Positions 33,075 to 53,141 of a stretch of DNA of 64,000 bases are shown in pieces. The stretch comes from Ascidiella aspersa. Lineage: Eukaryota. The DNA is taken from positions 29,946,001 through 30,010,000 of the forward strand of contig OZ004608.1 in the NCBI GenBank assembly GCA_963924565.1, written 5' to 3'. Position 1 is the stretch's first letter. Every line of letters starts with the position of its first letter. The notes beneath the pieces are model-generated. The model made no database searches. It was not told the origin of the DNA and was given only the letters and a program-made list of their open reading frames with translations. The position numbers and the translations under genes are program-made.

Positions 33075-36000
33075 TTACCACTGGCCAGGCCCCTTCCGCC
33101 CATGATCACTTGTGTTGGAGAATGGATTGGGGTCGTACTGATCGCAGACACGAAAGGGCTGAACCGCGATGCATTTGTTGACCATGACCAAAGCGGTTCG
33201 AGACGGAAGATAGACCTTAACAAAATTCAAAGGTTAAAACAAATAATACATTTAAAATAACCGGATCGGCCTTGTTCTGGCCAACTGCAAAGACAGCATT
33301 GGTTTGTTAACTGTTGAAATAGTTTTCAGACCAAAACATTTTTTATATTCATGATTTACATAAATGTTTGACATCAAGATTTTACATTTCCTCGCTATTT
33401 CAATAGTAAATTTTCATTAATATGGTATCACCTGAACATTTTTAGTCTTTTATGAATCACAATTTAACATCTTAAATCACATAACTCATTAAGACAATGT
33501 TTACCTGTACGGAGTTGTTTCTGTTGTCGAAGCTTCCAGACTCAGTGTTGAAATCCACGCTTGATTCAATCCTTCCGTAGCCTCCGTAGTAACTGTTATC
33601 GCTGTCAAGGACGATTTTGTATCTGAAAGCAAATCTCGAGTTTACAAGTGTGATTGCGAAACTTGTCATTTTTTTATATTTTAGCACGGTCTGTAAGCAT
33701 ATGTAACTTTACTCACTGTTTCAATATATTTATCCAATATGGCGCCAAAAAATCTTGTCAGCTTGGTAACATTGCCGTTCTTGTGGAGTTCGAAAGATAT
33801 TTTTGCAAATATGTTATACCGTAATATCGGTTTGAGTTATACTTTAACCGTACTACAGAGGGCGACTTTTAAGCACCTCTAATTAAAAGCACATCTTTCA
33901 AAATTGTAGGTTTCAAAAGGCTGAAGGCATTCAAGGGCACAAGCTCTTTACTTACGTTCCAGCCTTGTCAACTCCAACACGGTATCCGGGATAGCTCTTG
34001 GTTGGATGAAAGTTGAAGAGAAAAAGCAAGTCGGCCCGCTCGAAGACGAACACCTTGTCTCCCTCGTGTTTTCGACTCACATAGCCCTGTTAAAGAAAGG
34101 CAATATAGCACTGAAAATACTTGGAAACCGTTATCCATGTGGTAAAATGAGTGAGATAGGATACGTTAAAATATTTGTTTACGGCAGTGAAAGTAAGTCG
34201 GAAAGGTTTTTTTTTGGTACATATTATCCGTAAAAAATGTTCCTTTTTTACCAGGCCATGTTCTTTTTTCAACAGGCTTTCCTTTATAATTAAAAAAGTT
34301 TTTAAGTTGTATAGTGGTGCACTACATCGAGCGATAACCTCAGGTTCCTATGATTCCTTTTTAGACGTTCCGTTGTGACGTAATATTGTTACGTCATCTC
34401 TGAAAAATTCCATGCGTTACAGTAAAAAAAAATCACTGTTTCCGTAAGAAAATTATTCTACACTACCATTACTTGTTTGGTATATTTGCATTACGATAGA
34501 AAATGCCGTTTTTATTGGCTCAAAATTTACAATTGGGCATAATTCTTCACTGTTAAAAAATACCTACAAATTGGACCTATTTAAGAAGAAGAAACTACAA
34601 GCCAGTACAACAAAAATATAGTCTTTACCGGTGCAGAACAGAGCCATCCGTGCTGTTGTTCCAGCTCGTTGAGAGCCTTCTCGAAGCGAGCGAGGAACTT
34701 GTAGCGTAGCTGCTGGTCGTCACACAGCTCGTAGCGACGCCGGGAAAACTCCAAGCTCCAAGAGTTGTGCTCCGACGGCAGCTCCAGCTGATCTGGATGC
34801 CCGAACTCGTTGCCTGGCAACAAAGATTTTAAAGTCTCAACTTTTGTCTAGTGATTTTTAATAAGGGAAGGACTGGAGGTATCGATGCTTTGGATTGTTA
34901 AAAATTACGAAATATGTGTGTATAGCCGACTCGATTCGGAGTTTTACACTAGGGAATTTATTGTGGTATTACTTTTTAGATTTTAACATAAATAATGAAT
35001 ATGTTGGTTAAGGGGAATATGGCCATCCTAAACGTTTTATACTCAACATTCAGAATAAGATCGACACAAGAATAGAATAATTAACTGCACTGCTTTCAAA
35101 ATACAATTTACTGAAATCCGTTCGACATATTGTACTGTATAAGAAATATTTACCTGAGGTTTAATATGGAGTTGAAATACTTTCAAAATATGTTTAAGCA
35201 TTTTGACCAATCCTCAATATATATGTTGTATATAGGCTAGCAAGAATTTACCTTACGGATGGGCGAACCTACTTACCCATGAAGTTCATGTAACTCTCCC
35301 CAGCCAAGGAGTGGGTCATCAAGCGAATCATCTTGTGCAGCGCCATGCCCCTTTCCACCCCAGGGGTGATGGGTTTCGATTCGGACATGTTGTGGCAAAG
35401 TTCGTTGCCCATCAACTTGGAAATCAGGGTCTGTTGTCCTGCCATGCTCTGCGAGTGAATCACACATCATTAAATGGCACAGTATTCAGCATAAAATATA
35501 CTAAAGTGTTTTCATGTTTGCATGGACGAGTTTACCATAAAGGTAAGTATGGGTATTGTTTTAAATTTAAACCTTTTTATATAGGCAAATACCGCCCTGT
35601 GGTTTTGGACATAAAATTGATTTACTAGCTTAAGCAGTTAATTAGGCTGTATTGTTTAATTTGAAAAATATACCGGTTTGTGATGCTTGATATCACAATA
35701 AAGTATTAGGAAAAGTGTATACCAGGCAGAACAAACTTAACGCTTGATCTGGGCGTAAATGAAACAATACACAACAAATGAATGTTCACACTTACCTGTT
35801 GGCGACTTTCAGCCATAGCAACTGTTTTTTCTCCTTTGCGTTTCTGGGTCATGGCGTGGAAAATAAATCCCATGTTCCAGTCTTCATCTCTGCTCTCATC
35901 CAATAACTGTAAGCAGAACACAAGGTTTTCCAATTATAAATCAAACGTTGATCAGTAATTTTTTATTACTACGCTCGTCTCAATTTATTGAACTATAGGG

Positions 36001-39000
36001 TGGCATGAGCAATTTGACTAATCATATAAAGTAGAATAAATTGTTAATTGAATATTGTTCCAACAGTTCAACGTCACCAAAACTTAATGGTGTTCCGAAA
36101 CCTACAGTTTTTTCAAACGCTCACCTTCACCCATTTGTTGGGAACCGAGGTTCCGAGCTTGTAGTCGAATCCGAATCCACCTTCGCGGATCGATCGGCAC
36201 ATTCCTGGCATTTCTGATTCTTGCTGCATGCAATAGAAAACAATCAACTTTAAGTTATAGGCCTAAGTTGCAAAAACTTTTTGCTACATATATTGTACAT
36301 TGTAGCCAGAACCTTACATCTAAATGAAGCCGCTCGAAACTTACCTGAGCAATCGTGAGGACGTTTGGGAAGAAGCTGTGAAGCATGTCGTTGGCCAATG
36401 TCAGGTAAGCAATCGATTCAAGATCGATGTGGGTGCCAAAGTACTGTCGGTAGTCGTCAGACCAACGACGACCTGACAAAAGTCTCTGGTGTTAGGACCA
36501 AACCAGTAATGTCAATAAAAAACATTTAGCTTTCAGCAAACGTTAAGTTAAGTTTATCAAATGTTTGCAAAGACTAATAAATAGGCACGGGGCTAGTGCA
36601 TTGCTTAGGCCTTAGGCGTTGCTTTATAGCTCTATCATATACCTTCGCTGCGGTCGTGATAAATCATGGAATCGACTCCGTTGAACCTGAATCCGTCAAA
36701 GTTGAACTCGTCCATGAAATAACGGAGGTTGGACATCAGAAACCGCAGCACTTCCCATCTGGGGACAAAACAGTATATGATAATCTGCTGTTAGACGAAC
36801 CTATACGCGGTTACACTAGCGATTTTCATGAATGCGTTGCCTATCTATATGTAAGATGGCGATTAATGAAATATTAAAAAGCAAATTAAAAATTGAGCCT
36901 ATTTTTTACAGTTGCCTTTGCCTTGCTACCAATTCATGGAAGATTAAAAAACCTTGCGACACTAAAGATTAAAAAATATTGTGACACTATTAAGGCGGAG
37001 TTAATCAGCTGGCCAAGAACCATAGTAATTTCCGTACTTCGTGTAGTTAAACAATCGCGTTTGGCTCCGTTCCCTGGTGCCGCGTCTGCCCTCGTGAAAA
37101 TAACCGTCCACTGATCCGTCGAACATGCTCAGGCCGGTCTTGGCCATGTTGGAAGCCTCGTTGTGGTGGACGTCCATCATGACCGTAATGCCAATGCCGT
37201 GAGCGCTGTTAATGAGCATCTTAAGGTCCTCCGGGCTTCCGAAACGGCTGCAAATTAAACTGATGATTTAAACCGAATGCTGTTTTTTGCCCATGGATAT
37301 CATTTAGGCGTATATTAAGTGCTTTAAAATCGATATAAGTAAAATATTAGGTAGTTCTATGACAAGAATTTCATTTGTAGCCAATTTTACTATACATATT
37401 TATTTTATTTCAATTTAACTATTATTTCAATGTATTTGTCGGGATGTTTATTGTTTAAAATATTCCTTTTGGCTATACGAAATTAGTTTACATTTTACAT
37501 TTCACTTGGAAGTACGTGGTAGGCAAGCAAACATATATTAGGCTATGTACTTTACGTCAGCTATATTTTGACTTTGTTTGAAACTTTGACCGAGCTCAAG
37601 GCCTTTTTTTTATCTAATTTTTTTCTCGCTTAACTGTATGCACTTGTCACGTCTTAGTTCCAATTTAATAATTGTTTGAAGTTTAAAATTGATTTAAAAT
37701 TGATTTGCCATTGGTTTGTGGTTTTTACGTTTTTATGCCAAAATATTTCGAGTTTGTAATAATTTCAACTCGATATTATTATACCTTCCGGTACTACATT
37801 ATTCATCTCACAAAACCTCACACGGTATATTAAGACCATTACATACAGCACACACAAGCGTCGTACCTCGACACGGCAAAGAAGTTGGCCACCCTTTCGC
37901 CGAAGCTGGCGTATTGCGGGTGTTCCATGACGGCCAGCAGCAGGACGCAGTTGTAGCCCATCTCGCGGATGCGGGGAAGCACCTCGTGAGCGAACTGCCG
38001 GTAGGTGGCGACCTGGGGACGCACTGAGGCGGAACCGATGTGAGCCTCGTAGATGCGAAGACGCTCGGGCTTGGGTGGTCGTCTGTTGGTTGGCTGTGAA
38101 GAAACAGGTGGAAACACTTTTTAGGTGTTTGCTCAAATTGTTTTTTTAGGTGATGCTTGCAATGTTATGTGGCCTGTAGCAAAGTTCTGTAGTATTTTGA
38201 AGCAAACTGGTTGGTTTCATCAACCAATTAAATTATAAAAACGATTTAAACCTTGCATATTTTAAGAATATTTTTTTTTTTTTTTTTTATGCCTATTTCG
38301 GACAAGCTTTTTCAAAATATTTAAGGGTTAATTTTTTGTCCAGTCAGTTTTTGCAAATTAGCATATTTGTGTTTATGCGGATTGTAGCCATTATGATAGA
38401 ATGTCTTAAGCCTTAAATGGCTGATTTTACCGTAAGATATTATTCAAATTTTTGTGTAAAATTTGTTCGACTAAGAAACATATTTGTAATAGTAATGGCT
38501 ATAGCTTTTCATAATCCATGCACTTTACTTCAGTAAAACCACAACATTTTTCTATATTTACTTATTCTTGTTTTATCAAATCGCAGTGTTAATGCATAAC
38601 GCTTGATCGTAAAACCAAAGTAAGAAATTAAGAATGTAATCATTGATCGAATTTCGTTAGAAGGTATCAATCAGCGGCTATTTAATTGCATTGATATCCT
38701 CATGGTAAGAGCTTATCATTGTTGGCTTAACATTTAACAACAAGCTTTTCTACCAATAAAACATTTTTGCTTTCCAACCACAATCTCTCACCAAGCAGAC
38801 TTCGCTCCTGGGAGGATTCCACATCCTCCATTTCCGCGATGAGGAGTTGTTTTCCTCCACGAGGTATCTTGCCCAGGGAGACACCCTATCGATTCGCTGC
38901 TCTCCCTGCTTCCCATTGTTCTTCGTCTCAATAACGATCTGCGAAAGAAAATATAAAAGTTTGGATATTGACAAATTTTCTCCGGTGCCGCGTCTTGCCT

Positions 39001-40397
39001 AGTGAAAATCAACTCTTTCCCTAGTGAAAATAAAATAATTACGCTGATCGGTCAAACATTCTTAGGCCGGTCTTGGCCATGTTGGAAATACGTAAAAGTT
39101 TAGGTATTGACAAATTTTAAGTATTTTTTGTAAGTTGGTTACTTGTGCGCAGATTTCACAAAACATTAAACAAAACGCTAGATCTTCCTCGTTTTGTGTT
39201 TAAGATCTACTTTTGCTATGTAAAAATGTAATGCAACCTGTAGGAAAAACTTTGCGGGTAATAATTTTGCATAACCCTATAAAACCCAAGTCTCAATTTA
39301 ACACACAAAACGTTATACCATCGCTTTCAAAGGCGTTGCATTGACGTTATGTACTATACAAAGAAAGAAATCGACGCCAGGTGTATTACCTTCAATTCGC
39401 TGAGATGGTGAATGCGGCAAGTTCCGTCATGGTTGGGCGGAATGTACATCTCCCACTTGCCGTAAGCCTTCGCCTCGTAACCCCACTCTTCCCAGTTGTC
39501 TGCAAAAGCATTCCAAGATTACAGTTTTTTTTAATGCAACTTTAAACAACAAAAACATGGGACCCTCTATGTACAGGCACAGGTTTATACATGCCTGTAT
39601 CAAATTTTTCGATTGATAAATTAAAATGAATGAAAATGAATGCAGAGCTCGATTTGAATAAGATCAACCATTTACAGCTAATCAGTCACAATGTACCTTA
39701 TGTACTTCCACACGTATTTTCTGTCTCTACGTATTTCCGCGTACTAAACCGATTATCCTTAATCTAAACTACAGTATCATTGTTTTTTTTCTGGTTCACT
39801 GAGAAACGCATGCTCAACGCAACAAATTGTGGCCAATGACTTACTGAATTCTCCCTTAAGGAATATTGCTTTTGCGTTGGGCGCCCACTCTCTGCAAATC
39901 ACTGCGTTGTCGGGCAGAACGTTCACTCCGAAGTCTTTGTAACTGCGACTGAAGTTGTCCATTCCCTCAGACGAGTCGATGGCCGTGCGCGCCTTTTCGT
40001 AGATCGCATAGCTGAAAAAATATTATGGAAAGCTTTACCGATTGTCCTATTTCAACATTGAGTAGGTGGAACTTCGCTTTCTTGAAGAGTAGGAAATAAT
40101 TTATCTTGCTAGACGATAAATCACGATTACCACTTTAACAAATCCATTTTTTAAATAACTGTATGGCTGTAATATGCTACATTTCCCAAGTTGTAATGTT
40201 TATAACTTATTTTACTCTGCCTGGTAACAGATTGGAACTTACACAGTAATCTGTTAACTGTTCGAATTGTGATGAGCAACTTACCGTCTGCGAATGTCCT
40301 TCTCGAAGTTTCGAAGCTTCGGGTCGTTGTTCATCATGCTCTCGATGGCGGGGACTCCCCAGCGTTCGAAGTCGTTGTTATAGTCTGTGCTGTCCAT
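33075..40397 (-). CDS. Glycogen branching enzyme-like protein, copy A (CBM48 + GH13_8 fold, catalytic residues replaced), 724 aa. 15 exons: 40397-40285, 40011-39845, 39499-39390, 38938-38792, 38093-37867, 37247-37038, 36758-36643, 36472-36345, 36223-36125, 35906-35796, 35448-35277, 34813-34629, 34086-33956, 33622-33505, 33215-33075
   Basis: The exons sum to 2175 nt in frame. GBE1 motifs present: [69 protein letters not shown]. No gene symbol is given because the catalytic triad is absent, so this is probably a paralog of GBE1. Confidence 0.93.
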
Positions 40398-40529
40398 GGC
40401 GAATAGGTTCGGTCCAAGTTGAAATGAATAAGGCAGCAAAGGTAACTGACAATTAGACGACTGTAAGGCACGTTGTACTCAATTGAAGCTCAGTTGTGAA
40501 CTGAATGCTGATGGAAGAGATGAAGCTAT

Positions 40530-40650
40530 TTTTATAGGCGCGAACGGGCGGATTAAAATTTGAGCGATGATTAAACTTAAGAAGATGCAATTTTACGGAT
40601 TAATTTATAGTTGTATATGCGCTTCATGAGTTCGTTTATTATTTTAATCC
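40530..40650 (-). promoter_or_regulatory. TATA box and TAATCC sites of GBE-like copy A
   Basis: CGCCTATAAAAA on - (TTTTATA at 40530-40536), ~135 nt upstream of the ATG. GGATTA/TAATCC at 40550, 40597 and 40645. The TATA box is conserved in copy B. Confidence 0.65.
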
Positions 40651-42591
40651 ACTTCCTATTGGACACGATCGGGAAATAGCGCATCCAGTTTCAAACTCTT
40701 CGTTATGAGGGTCACGTCAAACTTTAGAATGGGCTGACTTATATCAAAAATATTAAATACGAGCGGTGCTCTCACAAATACTTTTAAATGTATTATTCCA
40801 ACTTTTTTAATGCCTTACTGCCATTAAACATAATTGTTAACTAAAGAACAATACACTTTTTATTTGACTTCATAACCTAACATTGTTAGCCCGCTTTGAT
40901 GAATCTTCCTGTCCCAAAAGCGCCCTGCTTGTACAATTCATTATTATAAGTTCATTAAAAATGGACACGTAACATAAGGTGTAGCCAAATAAGTTAAATC
41001 ATTTATCCCTCGGCATATAGGTTTTTGGCCAATAGGCTTTTAAATATCTCCCAAATTAAATCAGGAAAAATATCACAAAACGTAAGAATAAAAGGTCATA
41101 CAGTATAGGTAGTAGGCCTACCACCTTTCTACATCTAGATACTACCTCCAGGTATTATACTTCAAAGTGTTTTTTTAATTTAATTGCATGTTTACGAGGA
41201 AGGGATTTTATTGGGTTGACTTGTATAATTTTTTCAACATTCCGTACCAAACATACATAATAGCAAGATCAAGATATTGAACAACTTAACAAATGAAGGT
41301 TACTCGATCTATAAGAGTGTTGAGGCCTAGGATAATACTATATGATTACCTCTATCGCACATATGATAACCTAAATTTGTAAACTAGGAAAGTGCCGTAA
41401 ATTACGTAGTTCTGGACTGTAAAGGCTTACTTTCATCACTGGATTCGATAAAAATGGTATTTTTTCAACATTTGCCTAGCCTATATATATTTAGTTTTCA
41501 AATAAGACGCAGGTTAAGTAAACCATAACATGGTAACACTATATGGTTACGGAACATGCGTTAAACCAGTTTGTTTAGCAAAACATTACAATAAAATAGA
41601 TATTTAGTAAAGTTACAATAAAAGAGATTGAAACAGCTCATTCCCTGTGCAACAAGGTTGAAAACCCTTTTTAATATTTTGCATTTTTATCGTACACAAA
41701 AATGTGTATCCACAAGCTTACCAACAGAGTGGAATTTGAAATCCTAATTTAATATCTCTCGGTACCCTTGAGCGTTGTAAACAACACGTAGAAGTGCCGC
41801 GGCACCCCGGTTGAGAAGCACTACCTTAAACATAACTATTGTTTTTATAGACACACTGTAACGGGGTTAATATATCAGGAAACTTTATTAGTGGACATTA
41901 CTTCTAATTTACTATTTGTTGCCCGCAGTATATTTTATTTTACCCAATTTTGAGTTTTTAACGTGAGTGTTTACGTTTCTTGTAGCCCATAATAAGTATC
42001 TATGGCATCGTTATGAAGCGATTTTCGGGGAATCCTTTGAGTTTCTGGCGCATTTATCGAAAAGAAATAACAAAAAAAAATCTATTAGCATTTGTTTAAA
42101 TGTTTCAACTTTTTTACTGCCTATAAATCAACTGCTACCTTTTCAAACATGTGAATATTTTGTATTGGATGGAATGGATTCAGCTGAGTTTAAATCAAAA
42201 AATAAGAATCATGCGATTTAAAAAAAGTCATACGATTTGATGAACAACAAAATCAGTTATGCGGTAAACAAACTTTAATATTAAACACAATTTCCATGTT
42301 GAAGTTGCGACAATCTGCATCAACTGCATATTTTGGTAATTTAAGTTGCAGCGCAATATGAAAATGATGTTTCTTAGCAATTGTCAAATTTTCACAACGT
42401 ATAGGTGCGATAAGTGTGTGGGAATTTCAGTTCAAATTTCTTCCGTTTTAATAGCTGCGTCAATCTTTCAAAACTTTCCCAGCTAATCCGATCAACGTAA
42501 TCGCCAAAGTTCCGACTTGACCCTAATTTGTAACATAATGATTTAAAACTTTTCGCGCGCGCGGTTTCCCGATGGCTGTACAATGGGAAAT

Positions 42592-42727
42592 GGATTAAAC
42601 TCAATGAAACCCATAAGCGAACTCACGCAACCCATATATCCACTTAATTTCTAAACCTCGGAAATTGCATTTAAAGCTTAATCATCGCGTGTATTGCAAC
42701 TTAATCCGCCAGTTCGCGCCTATAAAA
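42592..42727 (+). promoter_or_regulatory. TATA box and TAATCC sites of GBE-like copy B
   Basis: CGCCTATAAAAA (TATAAAA at 42721-42727), an Inr-like TCAGCA/TCAGTT ~25-35 nt downstream, GGATTA at 42592 and TAATCC at 42702. Confidence 0.65.
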
Positions 42728-42859
42728 ACAGCTTCAACTCTTCCATCAGCATTCAGTTCACAACTGAGCTTCAACCGAATACAACGTGCCTTACAGCCAT
42801 CCAGTTTTCAGTTACCTTTTCTGCCTTATTTGTTTCAACTTGGACCGAAGCTAATCGCC

Positions 42860-45800
42860 ATGGACAGCACAGACTACAACAACGATTTTGAACGCTGGGG
42901 AGTCCCCGCCATCGAGAGCATGATGAACAACGACCCGAAGCTTCGAGACTTCGAGAAGGACATTCGCAGACGGTAAGTGGCGCATCACAGTCTAACACTG
43001 TATAATTATCACATTTTTAACAGTTTACAGATTATAGTGTAAATTACATTCTGTTAAGAAAAATTAGGAACATTACATTTTCGGAAAGTTTGTAAATTAC
43101 AGCATTTGTAAAAGTTCGAATCGGTGATTTAATCGTTAATTTCTCTTCTAGCATGGTAAATCATTCCAAACTCTTTCAAAATCTAAATTTTACCCTACTC
43201 AATGTTGAAATAGGATAATCGGTAAAGCTTTCCATAATATATCTTTTCAGCTATGCGATCTACGAAAAGGCGCGCACGGCCATCGACTCGTCTGAGGGAA
43301 TGGACAACTTCAGTCGCAGTTACAAGGACTTCGGAGTGAACGTTCTGCCCGACAACGCAGTGATTTGCAGAGAGTGGGCGCCCAACGCCAAGGCAATGTT
43401 CCTCAAGGGCGAATTCAGTAAGTCATTGGCAACAATTTGTTGCGTTAATCAGTGTAGCATAAACGAACTAAGGACACTATGCACTTATTCATTGGTAATC
43501 GGTATGATAAACGCAATTACATTGTTCAGCGCTGGAAATGTCTTTGCACTGAGTTATATAAAACTCCATCTTTACATTCGTTTTATTTAGCTTAAATTTA
43601 TCAATTCGAAATATTAAATTTAGACAGATTCAATCATGCGCCTATTCAGTTACACTTGCACAGAGGGCCATATAACTATTCGTTGAATTTAAGTTCTACT
43701 AATGGAACAAGTTGTAACTAGTTCAATGCCTTCGCAGACAACTGGGAAGAGTGGGGCTACGAGGCAAAGGCTTACGGCAAGTGGGAGATGTACGTTCCTC
43801 CCAACCATGATGGAACCTGCCGCATTCACCACCTCAGCGAATTGAAGGTTTGCGTTTTCCGTTTTATGGCGTGCATATAGGCTACATCGTACCAAGAAAT
43901 GCCGTTATAAACACTACATTGCGTGCAAGTCGGTGGAATAAATCAACTTTTGAGGCTGACAGAGAACTATTTTTTAACCAACGTCAGCACGTTTTAACGT
44001 ATATAAAACAATTCTAAAAAACAAAAAAATCTTCGCAAAAATTATTATGATCTACAGTGCTATAACAAAATGATAATATATTTAAGCTTATATGAATGCT
44101 TTAAAATGGATAAAAATATCAAAATAATTTACGAGTAATTTAAAAAAATACCCACATTAGCCATTGGATATTAAAATCAAGCCAACTTTCAATTATTTTC
44201 TCGTAGATCGTGATAGAAACAAAGAGCGAAGGAAAGCACGAAGAGCAGCGAATCGAGCGAGTGTCTCCCTGGGCAAGATACCTCGTGGAGGAAGACAACT
44301 CCTCATCGCGGAAGTGGAGGATGTGGAATCCTCCCAGGAGCGAAGTCTGCTTGGTGAGAAATTGCGATTGGAAATCGACGATATTATATTCATAGGAACG
44401 CTTGATGTTAAATGTTGATAAGCTCTTAGGCTAAACATATCAATGCAATAAAAAAACTGCTGATTTACAACTTTTAACGAAATCCAGTCAACGATATCAT
44501 TTAATATTTCTGACTGAGGTTTTACGATCAAACGTTATGTATCGCTTTGGACCACAGAACATTACAAGCAGCACTTTTTTGAAAAAACTAAAAGACCAAA
44601 CACCTGAAAAGTTTTTCCATATATTTTCCCCACAGCCGACCAACCGACGACCACCCAAGCCCGAGCGCCTTCGCATCTACGAGGCTCACATCGGGTCCGC
44701 CTCAGTGCGTCCTCAGATCGCCACCTACCGGCAGTTCGCTCGCGAGGTGCTTCCCCGCATCCGCGAGCTGGGCTACAACTGCGTGCTGCTGCTGGCCGTC
44801 ATGGAACACCCACAATACGCCAGCTTCGGCGAGAGGGTGGCCAACTTCTTCGCCGTGTCAAGGTACGACGCTTGTGTGTGCTGTTTTTTATGGTCTCCAT
44901 GAAACGTGTGAGGTTTTGTGAGACGAATAGGGACGGAAATAATATTAGAGTACCGGAAGATATAGTAATATTAGGTTGAAACAAAACTCGAAAACTTTTC
45001 AATAAATATAAACCTAAAAATTACAAACTAGCGGTACGACAATTTTTGTAAATAACTGTCAAACTTTAAAGAATTATTAAATTGTTACTAAATCGTAACA
45101 AGTAAACATAGCCTATCAAAAATTACTTCCATGTTTAAACAAGTACTGAAGCGGCGCATTATATTTTGTTCTTATCAATCTTTATGGATACAAGGGTCAT
45201 CCAATAAGAGTAATTGTTCCTTGTTTAAAATCATCAGTTATTTTGCAGTCGTTTCGGAAGCCCGGAGGACCTTAAGATGCTTATCAACATCGCGCACGGC
45301 ATGGGCATCACGGTCATGATGGACGTCCACCACAACGAAGCTTCCAACATGGCCAAGACCGGCCTGAGCATGTTCGACGGATCAGCGGACGGTTATTTTC
45401 ACGAGGGCAGACGCGGCACCAGGGAACGGAGCCAAACACGACTTTTCAACTATACAAAGTACGCCAATTACTTTTCGCTAGCCCATAAGTGTGTTACAAT
45501 CTTCTTAATCTTCAGTGTCGAAAGGGCCTTTAGTATTTTAATTTTGTCCTTAGATGGGAAGTGCTGCGATTCCTGATGTCCAACCTCCGCTACTTCATGG
45601 ACGAGTTCAACTTTGACGGATTCAGGTTCAACGGAGTCGATTCCATGATTTATCACGACCGCAGCGAAGGTATGTGATAGAGCTATAAAGCAACGCCTAA
45701 GGCCTAAGCAATGCACTAGCCCCGTGCCTATTTATTATGCAGCACAAATCTATGCAACCCTTTAATGAACTAAACTTAAAGTTTGCTGAAAGTTGAATGT

Positions 45801-47392
45801 TTTTTTTTCTTGACATTACTGGTTTGGTCCTAACACCAGAGACTTTTGTCAGGTCGTCGTTGGTCTGACGACTACCGACAGTACTTTGGCACCCACATCG
45901 ACCTGGAATCGATTGCTTACCTGACATTGGCCAACGACATGCTGCACAGCTCCTTCCCAAACGTCCTCACGATTGCTCAGGTAAGTTTCGAGGGAATTCA
46001 TTTAGCTCTAAGTATCCTGGTTATAATGTACAATATGGTTATGTAACAAAAAGCCTTCACAACTTAGACCTATAACTTAAAGTTGATTGTTTTCTATTGC
46101 AGCAAGAATCAGAAATGCCAGGAATGTGCCGATCAATCCGCGAAGGTGGATTCGGATTCGACTACAAGCTCGGAACCTCGGTTCCCAACAAATGGATGAA
46201 GGTGAGCGTTTGAAAAAACTGTAGGTTTCGGATCACCATTATCTTTTATTTACGTTGAACTGTTGGAACAATATTCAATAAACAACTTATTTCATATGTT
46301 TTGTCAAATTACTCATGTCACAACACAGTTCAATAAATTGTGGTGGGCGCAAAAATAAAAAATGACTGATCAAAGGTTGAATTATTATTATTGGAAAACC
46401 TTGTGTTCTGCTTACAGTTATTGGATGAGAGCAGAGACGAAGACTGGAACATGGGATTTATTTTCCACGCCATGACCCAGAAACGCAAAGGAGAGAAAAC
46501 AGTTGCTATGGCCGAAAGTCGCATACAGGTACGCTTAAATATCAAATTGGTGTGTATTGTTGCCAGAGAAAGCGTTGAGTTTTTGCTGCCAGGTGTATAA
46601 TTCTTACAAATGTATCCTGGTGATATCAAGCATTACAGACTTGTATCTTTTTTTAATTAAACCACAGGTTATTCGTTAAAATATATGGTGATAAATATTG
46701 ATATGCCATTCCCTCGCAGAGTATGGCAGGACAACAGACTCTGGTTTCCAAGTTGATGGGCAACGAGCTTTGCCATAACATGTCTGAATCGAAACCCATC
46801 ACCCCTGGGGTAGAAAGGGGCATGGCGCTGCACAAGATGATTCGTTTGATGACCCACTCCTTGTCTGGGGAGAGCTACATGACCTTTATGGGTAAGTAGG
46901 TTTAACATTCAGTACGGTAAAGTGTTGCTATATACAGTGCTATATACAGTGGGGAGCCACCGTAAAATAGCATTAGCTCCGGCTCCAGCTCCGGAGCCAT
47001 CAGACAATTATTAAATGGCTCCGGCTCCAGCTCCGGAGTCGTGAAACTCAATCCTTTGGCTCCGGCTCCAGCTCCGGAGCCATCAAACACACACCCAATG
47101 ACTCCGGCTCCAGCTCCGGTGCCACCAGTCACTTATTCAATGGCAAGTTTTAAAAATTGCTTTTGGCTAACTAACGTTGGAGATGGAACAAAATATAATT
47201 TCTTAGCTTTAGCACCACAAATTGAAAAATGGCTCCAGCTCCACAAAAATAATAAAAAGGGCTCCGGCTCCGGCTCCAGCTCCACAAAAATAATAAAAAT
47301 GGCTCCGGCTCCGGCTCCAGCTCTACAAAAATAATAACAATGGCTCCGGCTCCGGCTCTGGCTCCAGAGAAAATGCTTAGCTCCGGGCTCCA

Positions 47393-47427
<35 letters not shown>

Positions 47428-49670
47428 CCAGCCCTGGCTATATACAACATAGATGTTTGGAGGATTGCTCAAAATGCCTGAAAAAAGTTGTTGCGCCACG
47501 ATATAATTACAACCTTTAGCGAGGTTAAATACGTTTTTCAAATCTATAGGGGGTTTCTTTTAATTTTGAGTTTTTTAAGTAGTACAATTGAATTTGATTA
47601 CTTAAATATTAAGTTAAAATTTTGGGATCGTGCAAATGTCGCAAATAGCCATATATATATACAGTTCTACCGCAATAAACCCATTTCGCGTATTACCGTT
47701 AAACTGGGATCAGGTCCGGATCCAAGATTTTTGCCCAAATCTTTAAATTATTTGCCAAAACTTTAACATTCGAGGGCTCGATGAGACGCACTTCGATTGT
47801 AAAAAAAATAGGCTGGCATACTACAAAACATAATTGAGTTTCGCACCTACGATTCGAGTCGACCCTGCACACATAAGACATTGTTTTTAAAACCGCGAAC
47901 CGCATATGCACCCAAACCAAAATTTGAATGCCAAAAGCAAAGGTCAAGACTTCCGAATCTTTGTTGCCAGGCAACGAGTTCGGGCATCCTGACCAGTTGG
48001 AGCTGCCGTCGGAGCGCAACTCTTGGAGCTTGGAGTTTTCCCGGCGTCGCTACGAGCTGTGTGACGACCAGCAGCTACGCTACAAGTTCCTCGCTCGCTT
48101 CGAGAAGGCTCTAAACGAGCTGGAACAGCAGCACGGATGGCTCTGTTCTGCACCGGTAAAGACTATTTTTTTGTAATAACTTGTAGTTTCTTCGTAGTTA
48201 AACTAGGTCCAATTCGAATGTTGTTTTTGAACAGTAAAGTATTGTGCCCAAAAGTAAATTTCAGGCCACTGAAAATGGCACTTTCTAACGTAATGCAAAT
48301 ATACTAAACAAGAAGTGGTAAGAGTAGAATAATTTTCTTGTCGGAACGATAAAGTTTTTTTAATGGAACGCAAGGAATTCTTAATAGAGGACGTACAATA
48401 TTACGTCACAACGTGACGTCTAAAACAAGTGACCTTGTTATCGCTCGATGTAGTGCACTAAAGTACAAATAAAAACCCATTTTAAATACATTCAAGAAAG
48501 CCTTTAGGAAAACGAACATGGCCTGGTAAAAAATAACATATTTTACCGATAATATATACCAAAAAACCTTTCCGGCTACTTTTACCACTGTGAACAAGTA
48601 TTTTAACGTATCCTATCTCACTCATTTTGCCACTTGGATAAAGATTTCCAAGTATTTTCAGTGCTATATTGCTTTTCTTTCACAGGGATATGTGAGTAGA
48701 AAACACGAGGGAGACAAGGTGTTCGTCTTCGAACGAGCCAACTTGCTTTTTCTCTTCAACTTTCATCCAACCAAGAGCTATCCCGGATACCGTGTTGGAG
48801 TTGACAAGGCTGGAACGTAAGTTAAGACCTTGTGCTCTTGAGTGCCTTCAGCCTTTTAAAGCCTTGGCGTAGATTTTGGGCTATTTGCTATTAATTAGGT
48901 TTGCTTAAAATCGCCCCTCTCTAATGCGCTTACAGTATAACTCAAACCGATATTTGTTACAATATATCTGTAATGTCATCAAGCTAAAAAACGTTTTAAA
49001 CGTCATATTGGATAAATATATTGAACTAGTGTGTAAAAATTATATATGTTTTTACAGTACTGGTGATTTAACCGCAAATCAAAAAAGACAAGTTTCGTAA
49101 TCACACTTAAACTCGAGACTTGTTTTCAGATACAAAATCGTCCTTGACAGCGATAACAGTTACTTCGGAGGCTACGGCAGGATTGAATCAAGCGTGGATT
49201 TCAACACTGAGTCTGGAAGCTTCGACAACAGAAACAACTCCGTACAGGTAAACATCGTCAAAATGAGTTAAATTGTTTTGATTTCTGTAAACCTGTTTAT
49301 TCTTTGACGTCCCAAAATACTTAGTTAATATTGTTTTAGGTACGAGTTAATATTGTTTTAGGCTAAAAACCTGGTAAAAATGGTAAAAAAAATATCGATG
49401 TCTAAACTGATGTAAATTATATGAAGAAGTCGTGTTCTTAAAATACTTTTTTCAATATACTAATTGCGGTAGATATCGATCTGGTAAATCCGTAGTTCTT
49501 TTTAATATACAATCACGTTTGATTTTGTTTAGGTCTATCTTCCGTCTCGAACCGCCTTGGTCATGGTCAACAAATGCATCGCGGTTCAGCCCTTTCGTGT
49601 CTGCGATCAGTACGACCCCAATCCATTCTCCAACACAAGTGATTATGGGAGTAAGGGGCCTGGCCAGTGA
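42860..49670 (+). CDS. Glycogen branching enzyme-like protein, copy B (catalytic residues replaced), 723 aa. 15 exons: 42860-42972, 43251-43417, 43738-43847, 44207-44353, 44636-44862, 45249-45458, 45554-45669, 45853-45980, 46103-46201, 46418-46528, 46720-46891, 47971-48155, 48686-48816, 49130-49247, 49533-49670
   Basis: The exons sum to 2172 nt in frame. Exons 1-14 have the same lengths as in copy A. It carries essentially the same GBE1 motifs and all introns are GT-AG. Confidence 0.93.
46935..47436. mobile_element. hAT-type MITE rich in GGCTCC subrepeats, in intron 11 of copy B only
   Basis: The right end is GGCTCCCCAGCCCTG. The left end CAGTGCT..GGGGAGCC is disturbed by a 12-bp duplication. 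TSD GCTATATA lies at 46927-46934 and 47437-47444. The paralogous site in copy A (~35228-35240) is empty. Confidence 0.85.
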
Positions 49671-51533: not shown

Positions 51534-53141
51534 TCACACAGCAGTAGACAATATCTCGACGTGCATCGCCTCCATTTCTTCAACAGCGTCGGGCAAAGCT
51601 AAACGCAGGTCAATCGCGTCGCCGGCGTTTTCCTCCTGAATCCCGTCGGGAGAGAGCGCCTTTTCCTGACAGCATGCGAACTTGTCCAGCAGCGTTGAAT
51701 GGACCAGCGCGTTTGCTGCACTGCTCAGAGGCAGCAGGCTTCCTGCCAGCAGGGCGTAGTCTTCGGAGCTAAGTCGAAAAGCGCCGCCAACTGCTGGCAA
51801 GCAGATACAGGAGACCGGCGCCCAGCAGCAGAGGCGTACAAGTGTCATGAGTGAGGAGCGGCGCAGCATGCGAGCGTTAGGATGTCGGCGTTGGGTCAAG
51901 AGGCTTTTGTAGGCGAGAAGGCATGAAGCGGCCGCGTAGGACAAGAGGAGAAAGTTAACTGCCAGGATTGCGGCAGCGTACTGTTGCTGGCCTGTGTCTG
52001 AAGACGCAGCCAAGTTTGGCAAGCAAACGCTTGTAGTGCCGTAGTAGCCCAGGTTGCAGCTTAACGTTCGATCGGGTAAGACAGCCGCAATGAACTGCTC
52101 CGCTTCCGACCGGCCCATATTGGCGCACTTTGCTAGCTGAGCGGCGCGCTCCGCCAGTTTGAGCTTCATTGTTGACTCGGCAGCGAAGTAAAGGCGATGG
52201 GAAGAGACGTGAGACAGCACGCGTCCGCTGAAGTCGTACTGCAGAGGCAGTAAAGCCAGATAAAGCGCTAATAGCCAAGCGCACGCGCAAGAAAGCATCA
52301 CGATTTTCGCATTCGGTTTCTTCGCTGGATGCCGGAAAACGACGTGAAGCCACAGCGATGACATTATGGCCATTATGAAAATACCCGCCTCACTGGACAG
52401 AGTAAAAATCACTCCCGAGACCTTGCAAACGTCAATGGCTTGTACAAGGTGATCGAAGTCCGCGTTGAAGTCCAACAGCTCCCAGTAGAACCTCACCCCG
52501 AACAGGTACACTCCGTTTAGGCAGTCGGCTGTCGACAAACTGAGAAAGAGCAGGTTCAAGCAGCGAGTCAGCCCACTTGCTTTTCTGTCGCACCAGTAGA
52601 CCTTGGCAACCGTCAAAGACACAGCTAGGTTGCCGAAAAAGGCAACGTAGCACACGGCCCACAGCACGGTTTGAAACCAGGGCGGTGGAGCCACGAGCTG
52701 CCGCCTTAAATTTCTAAAGTCAACCTCTCTGTCCGTGCAAAAATCATCACAGGATGTGATTTTGTCGCAAAAGCTATCGCTATGTTTGGTTTGGCTGTCA
52801 TTGGGGCTGTCGTGCAGTAAGGGGCAAAGTTCCGCCTCATCTAAAACCATCCCGTCGTTCGCGCCAAGGCAAATCCATTCGCAAGGCGACAGGTTGATCT
52901 TGCCCGTCAGACCGCATATCTTTCGGATTGGTTCGCATTCCCATTCGCGTTCCGAAATCCATTTTTCGCTTCGGTTAATTTGCCTTTGCCAAGTTCGGTT
53001 GCACGCCAGTTCTATTATTTGCTCAGTTAGGTTAACCGAATAGTGACACCCCTTGTTGGCAGCCACGCACACTAAGGGCAGCATCAGCACAACAGCTAAA
53101 TCAAACAGCATACCTGTTGCATTTAGATACTTCGGCATCAT
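51534..53141 (-). CDS. Intronless class A GPCR related to the relaxin-receptor/LGR (RXFP, GRL101-like) 7TM group, 535 aa
   Basis: Single ORF with a signal-peptide-like N-terminus, a Cys-rich ectodomain and seven hydrophobic segments. Motifs: GNLAV (TM1), LSLSTADCLNGVYL (TM2), CKVSGVIFTLSSE (TM3), YYGTTSVCLP (ECL2), CCWAP (TM6), LLPLSSAAN (TM7). Confidence 0.8.
   Translation of the reverse strand: MMPKYLNATGMLFDLAVVLMLPLVCVAANKGCHYSVNLTEQIIELACNRTWQRQINRSEKWISEREWECEPIRKICGLTGKINLSPCEWICLGANDGMVLDEAELCPLLHDSPNDSQTKHSDSFCDKITSCDDFCTDREVDFRNLRRQLVAPPPWFQTVLWAVCYVAFFGNLAVSLTVAKVYWCDRKASGLTRCLNLLFLSLSTADCLNGVYLFGVRFYWELLDFNADFDHLVQAIDVCKVSGVIFTLSSEAGIFIMAIMSSLWLHVVFRHPAKKPNAKIVMLSCACAWLLALYLALLPLQYDFSGRVLSHVSSHRLYFAAESTMKLKLAERAAQLAKCANMGRSEAEQFIAAVLPDRTLSCNLGYYGTTSVCLPNLAASSDTGQQQYAAAILAVNFLLLSYAAASCLLAYKSLLTQRRHPNARMLRRSSLMTLVRLCCWAPVSCICLPAVGGAFRLSSEDYALLAGSLLPLSSAANALVHSTLLDKFACCQEKALSPDGIQEENAGDAIDLRLALPDAVEEMEAMHVEILSTAV

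Follow-up and report, generated by a model that had tools for sequence, protein, structure and literature searches.

A head-to-head pair of GBE1 paralogs with replaced catalytic residues in the ascidian Ascidiella aspersa: probable non-catalytic glucan binders from an old ascidian family

The locus

Ascidians, the nearest invertebrate relatives of the vertebrates, are represented here by Ascidiella aspersa, from whose genome we describe a stretch of 64,000 nucleotides (assembly GCA_963924565.1, contig OZ004608.1, positions 29,946,001 to 30,010,000 of the forward strand), referred to as the window. It contains two paralogs of the glycogen branching enzyme gene GBE1, copy A and copy B, which are arranged head to head and encode proteins with the whole catalytic triad of the enzyme replaced; such copies are called dead paralogs below. 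The original prediction had described two full-length frames with canonical introns and TATA promoters, and both were rebuilt as 15-exon models of 723 and 724 residues with a TATA box 139 nucleotides upstream of the ATG. The prediction used the two labels the other way round, its MAESRQQ copy being the one on the minus strand.

The models were obtained by a splice-site search scored against reference glycogen branching enzymes (GBEs), the references coming from a profile-free search with exon 5. Every exon of copy A maps to the minus strand without gaps and at 90-98% identity, and these counterparts make up copy B. The features of the pair are listed in window coordinates.

42860..49670, plus strand: copy A, dead GBE paralog; 15 exons, 723 residues (723 codons plus stop), spliced open frame, all introns GT-AG
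42860-42972, 43251-43417, 43738-43847, 44207-44353, 44636-44862, 45249-45458, 45554-45669, 45853-45980, 46103-46201, 46418-46528, 46720-46891, 47971-48155, 48686-48816, 49130-49247, 49533-49670 (stop included), plus strand: exons of copy A
33075..40397, minus strand: copy B, dead GBE paralog; 15 exons, 724 residues, open model from the mapped exons of A
40397-40285, 40011-39845, 39499-39390, 38938-38792, 38093-37867, 37247-37038, 36758-36643, 36472-36345, 36223-36125, 35906-35796, 35448-35277, 34813-34629, 34086-33956, 33622-33505, 33215-33078, stop 33077-33075, minus strand: exons of copy B, from high to low coordinates
40398..42859, no strand: shared head-to-head spacer of 2.46 kb, from the inverted-repeat scan (pair I3) and from reading of the sequence
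42721..42728, plus strand: TATA box of copy A, TATAAAAA in CGCGCCTATAAAAAC, 139 nucleotides upstream of the ATG
40529..40536, minus strand: TATA box of copy B, CGCGCCTATAAAAAT, 139 nucleotides upstream of the ATG

The inverted-repeat scan resolves the stretch as an inverted head-to-head duplication in which the exons match at 85-98% and most of the intron sequence is unalignable. Exon lengths are the same in both copies and all 28 introns begin with GT and end with AG. In the spacer, about 160 nucleotides beside each ATG are duplicated (arms 40268-40556 and 42701-42989) and the middle part is unique; the box TATAAAAA lies within the conserved CGCGCCTATAAAAA at the same distance from the ATG in A and in B. 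The stretch is free of assembly gaps (zero N). By hydropathy, A and B have neither a signal peptide nor a membrane segment (the maximal 19-residue Kyte-Doolittle mean is 1.23) and their N-termini are hydrophilic, with a mean of -1.2 over the first 30 residues, which agrees with the signal-peptide-free protein that had been predicted.

Loss of the catalytic residues

In human GBE1 the residues Asp357, Glu412 and Asp481 serve as nucleophile, proton donor and transition-state stabiliser, and they are strictly conserved in GH13 (Froese et al., PMC4581599). Their counterparts in A and B were identified by alignment to the human GBE1 chains 4bzy and 5clt as well as the rice and Candida branching enzymes; single exons were compared with solved structures, and enzyme positions are numbered as in human GBE1 (UniProt numbering). 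The codons concerned are the following.

45630..45632, plus strand: AAC, Asn351 of A, in the place of the catalytic nucleophile Asp357 of human GBE1
36680..36682, minus strand: AAC, Asn351 of B, at the Asp357 (nucleophile) position
45978..45980, plus strand: CAG, Gln406 of A, in the place of the acid/base Glu412
36345..36347, minus strand: CAG, Gln406 of B, at the Glu412 (acid/base) position
46520..46525, plus strand: CGC ATA, Arg474-Ile475 of A, in the places of His480 and Asp481 (CGC CAA, Arg-Gln, in B)
45337..45339, plus strand: GAA, Glu285 of A, in the place of His291 of region I, where DVVHSH has become DVHHNE
44831..44833, plus strand: GAG, Glu245 of A, in the place of the tyrosine of SFGY

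At the catalytic-residue places of GBE1 the two proteins thus read DVHHNE, FRFNGV, TIAQQES, MAESR(I/Q)Q and SFGE, the MAESRQQ and MAESRIQ variants being present as predicted, with the two labels exchanged. The triad Asp357/Glu412/Asp481 is represented by Asn/Gln/Ile in A and Asn/Gln/Gln in B. In the -1 subsite only Asp286 and Arg355 are retained; His291 is replaced by Glu and His480 by Arg, and the SFGY tyrosine by Glu. The AAC and CAG codons reported at these four coordinates were found there, and so was the replacement of five of the seven -1 subsite residues (H291, D357, E412, H480 and D481). We infer from these residues that A and B have no GH13 branching activity.

The fold, by comparison, is kept, again as predicted. 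The motifs REWAP, GEFNNW and GKWE, given in the prediction as those of CBM48, are present in both copies, and exon-wise hits to the structures 4bzy, 5clt, 3amk and 7p43 run along the protein, in agreement with the GH13_8 architecture. Searches of single exons against Pfam placed Alpha-amylase_C above the cut-off, and CBM_48 and Alpha-amylase below it. Of 228 columns without variation among 15 canonical metazoan GBEs, A and B retain about 70%, and the loops after regions I, II and IV hold those that nearly all dead members have lost.

Purifying selection on both copies

A and B differ by 75 synonymous and 29 non-synonymous changes, which correspond to 0.188 synonymous (dS) and 0.017 non-synonymous (dN) substitutions per site and a dN/dS of 0.09 (Fisher p = 6e-31), alike in every 90-codon block; a ratio well below 1 had been anticipated. 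Not one coding indel separates them in 2172 coding bases, and alignment of their 14 introns takes about 2050 gap columns, at 69% identity in the columns that do align. In a neutral simulation that gave each copy half of the synonymous distance, only about 0.03% of the open reading frames (ORFs) remained open per copy, and the open frames are therefore not due to chance. A and B are intact genes under strong purifying selection.

Two sets of DNA reads span the whole stretch. Among the 40 differences listed from them (90 others lie beyond the list) none hits a catalytic codon, and most of the listed exon differences agree with the base present in copy B, a sign of cross-placed contigs.

GBE1 and further paralogs in the same genome

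A search of the 308-Mb assembly with exon 5 returned six loci. One of these is a canonical GBE1 of 691 residues at C2:1,742,778-1,752,523 on the minus strand (pieces L007:7778 to L008:7523), on the same chromosome as A and B, in which the motifs DVVHSH, GFRFDG, VAEDVSG, YAESHDQ and SFGY are intact; the prediction had made the search for such a gene one of its checks. It follows the same 15-exon plan, and 11 of its first 14 exon lengths are identical to those of A and B. The dead genes therefore arose by duplication of GBE1 at the DNA level, and the pathway enzyme is present; a loss shared with the canonical gene was rejected, that gene being intact. Unlike all four intact dead paralogs, canonical GBE1 has no TATA box within 250 nucleotides of its ATG.

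Three further GBE-derived dead paralogs form a second cluster at C6:29,963,815-29,999,859 (29.96-30.00 Mb), which brings the dead copies in this genome to five.

L013:558-9859, plus strand: C6_3, 894 residues, intact
L012:1232-8910, minus strand: C6_2, 828 residues, intact
L010:3815 to L011:7935, minus strand: C6_1, exon 5 split by an insertion of about 6.5 kb

C6_2 and C6_3 repeat the head-to-head arrangement with both genes intact; their TATA boxes are at -102 and the dN/dS between them is 0.107. The motifs of the C6 proteins, DVMHGR, FRFSGV, TIADEHS and YPENHKQ, lack the nucleophile as well, through substitutions other than those of A and B, and the proteins finish with a low-complexity tail of Gly, Ser, Asn and Tyr, 130-200 residues long and made up of (T/A)SGNSYG repeats.

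The insertion in C6_1 carries, at L011:228-2589 on the minus strand, ORFs of 261 and 556 residues with THAP9_C, Tnp_P_element and TNP-like RNase H and GTP-binding domains, and C6_1 is broken by this DNA transposon of the P-element/THAP9 type. All three C6 genes have a GC-AG intron 4 (donor GCAAGT; for example after L013:2316, local position 2416 of the C6_3 region); the donor at this place is GT in A, B and the canonical gene.

An ascidian family of dead paralogs

The best match to exon 5 was the Ciona savignyi protein H2Y7M0, which is itself without the canonical motifs, and among protein representatives no match to exon 5 exceeded 64% identity. Searches with H2Y7M0 and then with the Clavelina relative recovered two dead paralogs each in Ciona intestinalis, Ciona savignyi and Clavelina lepadiformis, all of which carry no other names than 'branching enzyme' or 'branching enzyme-like'. 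Canonical GBEs were found in Ciona, Clavelina, Phallusia and Styela, and for Styela the searches gave no other GBE than the canonical one.

In a maximum-likelihood tree (LG+C20+F+G4; 22 sequences, 690 columns) all nine dead sequences included, from four species, form one clade with support of 100/100. This clade is sister to the canonical GBEs of ascidians (99/96) within a tunicate clade (100/100), a position that bears out the derivation from GBE1 that had been proposed. A and B are sister to the Clavelina protein P0154 (99/98), which is 58% identical to A, and the canonical GBE of A. aspersa is nearest to that of Phallusia (85% identity). A and B are members of an old ascidian-wide family of dead GBE paralogs.

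The members have lost their catalytic residues to different extents. Asp357 is absent from all of them, with Asn in A and B, both Clavelina paralogs and one Ciona pair, Ser in the C6 proteins, and Cys or Arg in the other Ciona pair; by parsimony, we infer that a change of Asp to Asn came first and was followed by drift at position 357. His291 is likewise lost in all dead members. Glu412 is retained except in A, B and C6, His480 is lost in A and B only, and Asp481 is retained in Clavelina P0154 only. The prediction had proposed a search of related species for orthologs with the same changes: paralogs without the nucleophile (Asn, Cys or Arg at 357) do occur there, whereas E412Q, H480R and the replacement of the SFGY tyrosine by Glu are restricted to the A/B pair.

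Other characters are private to the family and shared throughout it. Each of the ten dead sequences carries E210R, Q236L and D496G, and the N-terminus bears a motif W-G/E-V-P-x-I. The C-terminal tails measure 37-221 residues in dead members, compared with 8-13 in canonical GBEs, and that of Ciona P0153 is rich in Gly, Ser, Asn and Tyr, like the tails of C6.

The retained oligosaccharide cleft

In crystals of human GBE1, acarbose and maltoheptaose are bound in a non-catalytic oligosaccharide cleft where CBM48 meets the barrel, and the residues of this cleft have been named (PMC4581599). Across ten dead sequences from four species this cleft is kept at all eight informative positions, namely Trp91, Pro93, Tyr119, Gly120, Lys121, Trp332, Glu333 and Arg336, where position 119 is Tyr, Phe or His among the dead members. 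A and B would accordingly be able to bind glucan through the retained cleft.

A structural model is available for Clavelina P0154, the nearest public relative. This AlphaFold model has a predicted template modelling (TM) score of 0.83 and superposes on human GBE1 with a TM score of 0.94, as would be expected if the fold is kept; its parts of low confidence are the C-terminal tail and the loops around the old active site.

Proposed function and alternative explanations

On this evidence A and B are probably functional, catalytically dead GBE1 (GH13_8) paralogs that act as non-catalytic binders of alpha-glucan or glycogen. The family would go back to one duplication of GBE1 at the DNA level in the ancestor of ascidians, after which the duplicate would have lost the nucleophile Asp, most likely by a first change to Asn, together with the region-I His, and the dead copy would then have been retained for a non-catalytic job. 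Further duplications would have given the A/B pair and, on another chromosome, the second cluster. The losses have gone furthest in A and B, where all three catalytic carboxylates, both histidines of the -1 subsite and the SFGY tyrosine are replaced. The two proteins retain the GBE fold in full, together with every well-conserved residue of the oligosaccharide cleft. In the cell, such a cytosolic protein may attach to alpha-1,4-glucan chains or glycogen particles, which it would neither cut nor branch, and serve there as a binder, scaffold or regulator, much as the inactive beta-amylase BAM9, our working analogy, does for starch. The reading of A and B as non-catalytic proteins derived from GBE1, put forward in the original prediction, is supported by their sequences.

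Several observations weigh against a glucan-binding, non-catalytic role. Two of the ten human cleft residues, N62 and E63, are not conserved, and these vary among canonical GBEs too. Conservation of the other eight might reflect no more than their part in keeping CBM48 in contact with the barrel. Heavy remodelling has altered the rim of the former active-site cleft, which is of low confidence in the model of P0154, and a new ligand may be bound there. That A and B are inactive is itself read from their residues. Finally, the species has a single RNA data set, of unstated tissue, and a sample of about 7.8 million of its reads, taken without a control gene, included none on the exons of copy A; the only RNA reads in the stretch fall on a genome-wide repeat in intron 11 of A.

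An alternative that we consider unlikely, if the strongest of its kind, holds that A and B are non-catalytic proteins with a job unrelated to glucans: recruited as a structural or scaffold component, they would be produced in large amounts by a single cell type, after the manner of the enzyme-derived crystallins. The TATA promoters and head-to-head pairs of both clusters, set beside a canonical gene without a proximal TATA box, fit strongly regulated, high-output genes; the long C-terminal tails and the remodelled rim of the former active site point the same way, and the Gly/Ser/Asn/Tyr-rich tails of the C6 subfamily and of Ciona P0153 are typical of self-associating proteins. This proposal has to contend, however, with the complete retention of the eight informative cleft positions in ten dead sequences, when only about 70% of the canonically invariant columns are kept overall.

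Less probable still, and by a good measure, is that A and B remain enzymes whose old pocket has acquired a different chemistry or accepts a different substrate. Asp286 and Arg355 of the -1 subsite are retained in all members and Glu412 and His480 in most relatives, A and B have new acidic residues beside the old acid/base (QQESE), and constraint is strong along the whole barrel. Yet GH13 catalysis requires the Asp nucleophile (PMC4581599), which is replaced in every member, and by Asn, Ser, Cys or Arg, so that the position is no longer constrained; in A and B, moreover, none of the three catalytic positions holds a carboxylate, and both histidines are gone.

That A and B are unexpressed pseudogenes just starting to decay was rejected as very improbable, for against the zero exon reads in the one RNA data set and the breakage of the sister copy C6_1 by a transposon stand the selection results, with two intact 15-exon frames without an indel in 2172 coding bases as opposed to some 2050 gap columns in the introns, a dN/dS of 0.09, the conservation of promoter, TATA box and all splice sites in both copies, and an intact orthologous family in three other species.

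Comparison with known systems

The closest known system is canonical animal GBE1 (GH13_8, EC 2.4.1.18; human structures 4BZY, 5CLT and 5CLW), with which A and B share the succession of N-terminal helices, CBM48, (beta/alpha)8 barrel and C-terminal beta domain, the 15-exon plan and the cleft between CBM48 and barrel, at an identity of 47% with the vertebrate protein and of 53% with the GBE1 of their own genome. They differ from it by D357N, E412Q, D481I/Q, H291E, H480R and the change of the SFGY tyrosine to Glu, by remodelled active-site loops, a C-terminal tail of about 40 residues and a TATA promoter, and by their arrangement as an inverted pair. The dead GBE-like proteins of Ciona and Clavelina belong to the same clade (100/100) and resemble A and B in the absence of D357 and H291, in E210R, Q236L and D496G and in the W-G/E-V-P-x-I motif, but they still have E412 and H480, and P0154 also D481, which A and B have lost.

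Non-catalytic proteins with a GH13 fold are known in animals from 4F2hc and rBAT (SLC3A2 and SLC3A1), the precedent named in the original prediction and one from another branch of GH13. These are alpha-glucosidase-related, type II membrane glycoproteins that are disulfide-linked to SLC7 subunits (PMC8537225). A and B, in contrast, have no membrane segment and fall inside the GBE1 clade; a relation to SLC3 was rejected on the tree and on the absence of a hydrophobic segment, the closest relatives being branching enzymes and not glucosidases.

A functional parallel is offered by the plant inactive beta-amylases BAM4 and BAM9, which are also dead paralogs of a storage-glucan enzyme retained beside active paralogs. 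They regulate glucan metabolism without catalysis, and BAM9 binds and activates alpha-amylase 3 (PMC8774843, PMC12046210). They differ from A and B in fold and family (GH14) and are plastidial proteins of plants. More tentatively, and as a possibility that we hold to be rather doubtful, the ascidian proteins could be an old multi-member family of GBE1 pseudoenzymes that organise or regulate glycogen particles, in which A, B and the Clavelina members are plain glucan binders, and C6 and Ciona P0153, with their self-associating tail, could gather glycogen into condensate-like bodies; plant regulators of starch that lack catalysis would then have their first known parallel in an animal.

A phylogenomic survey found one GBE in most organisms except green plants and cyanobacteria and does not mention tunicates (PMC4236520). 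Full-text literature searches returned no description of a branching-enzyme pseudoenzyme from an ascidian or any other animal, as the original prediction had supposed, the sole mention being in a transcriptome study of Ciona, one of whose tables includes a 'GBE-like' gene (PMC8012850). The family itself is thus apparently undescribed, while GH13-derived non-enzymes as such are already known.

Judging by their residues, ascidians keep, over the long term and in several copies, GBE1 paralogs that would be unable to branch and in which the surface glucan site is retained. The family amounts to a natural separation-of-function allele series, in which the nucleophile only, then the acid/base and then everything is lost, and it could serve as a tool for the non-catalytic roles of GBE1; these bear on the polyglucosan diseases, in which the GBE1 protein and its binding to glycogen matter. 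Ciona is a tractable organism for a knock-out of the family, and annotations of ascidian proteins as 'GBE-like' should not be taken to indicate branching activity.

Other features of the window

Intron 11 of copy A contains, at 46900-47450, a repeat of 41-42-nucleotide tandem units rich in GCTCCG hexamers, which is missing from the shorter intron 11 of copy B. Its depth in the two sets of DNA reads is about 1000-fold that of its surroundings; this depth, and the many RNA reads that run on from it into unrelated sequence, identify it as a very abundant dispersed repeat. An uninterrupted ORF of 535 residues lies a short way downstream of copy A, on the minus strand at 51534-53141. It has a weak match to the rhodopsin family of seven-transmembrane proteins (E = 2e-6, under the Pfam cut-off) and may be an intronless gene for a G protein-coupled receptor.

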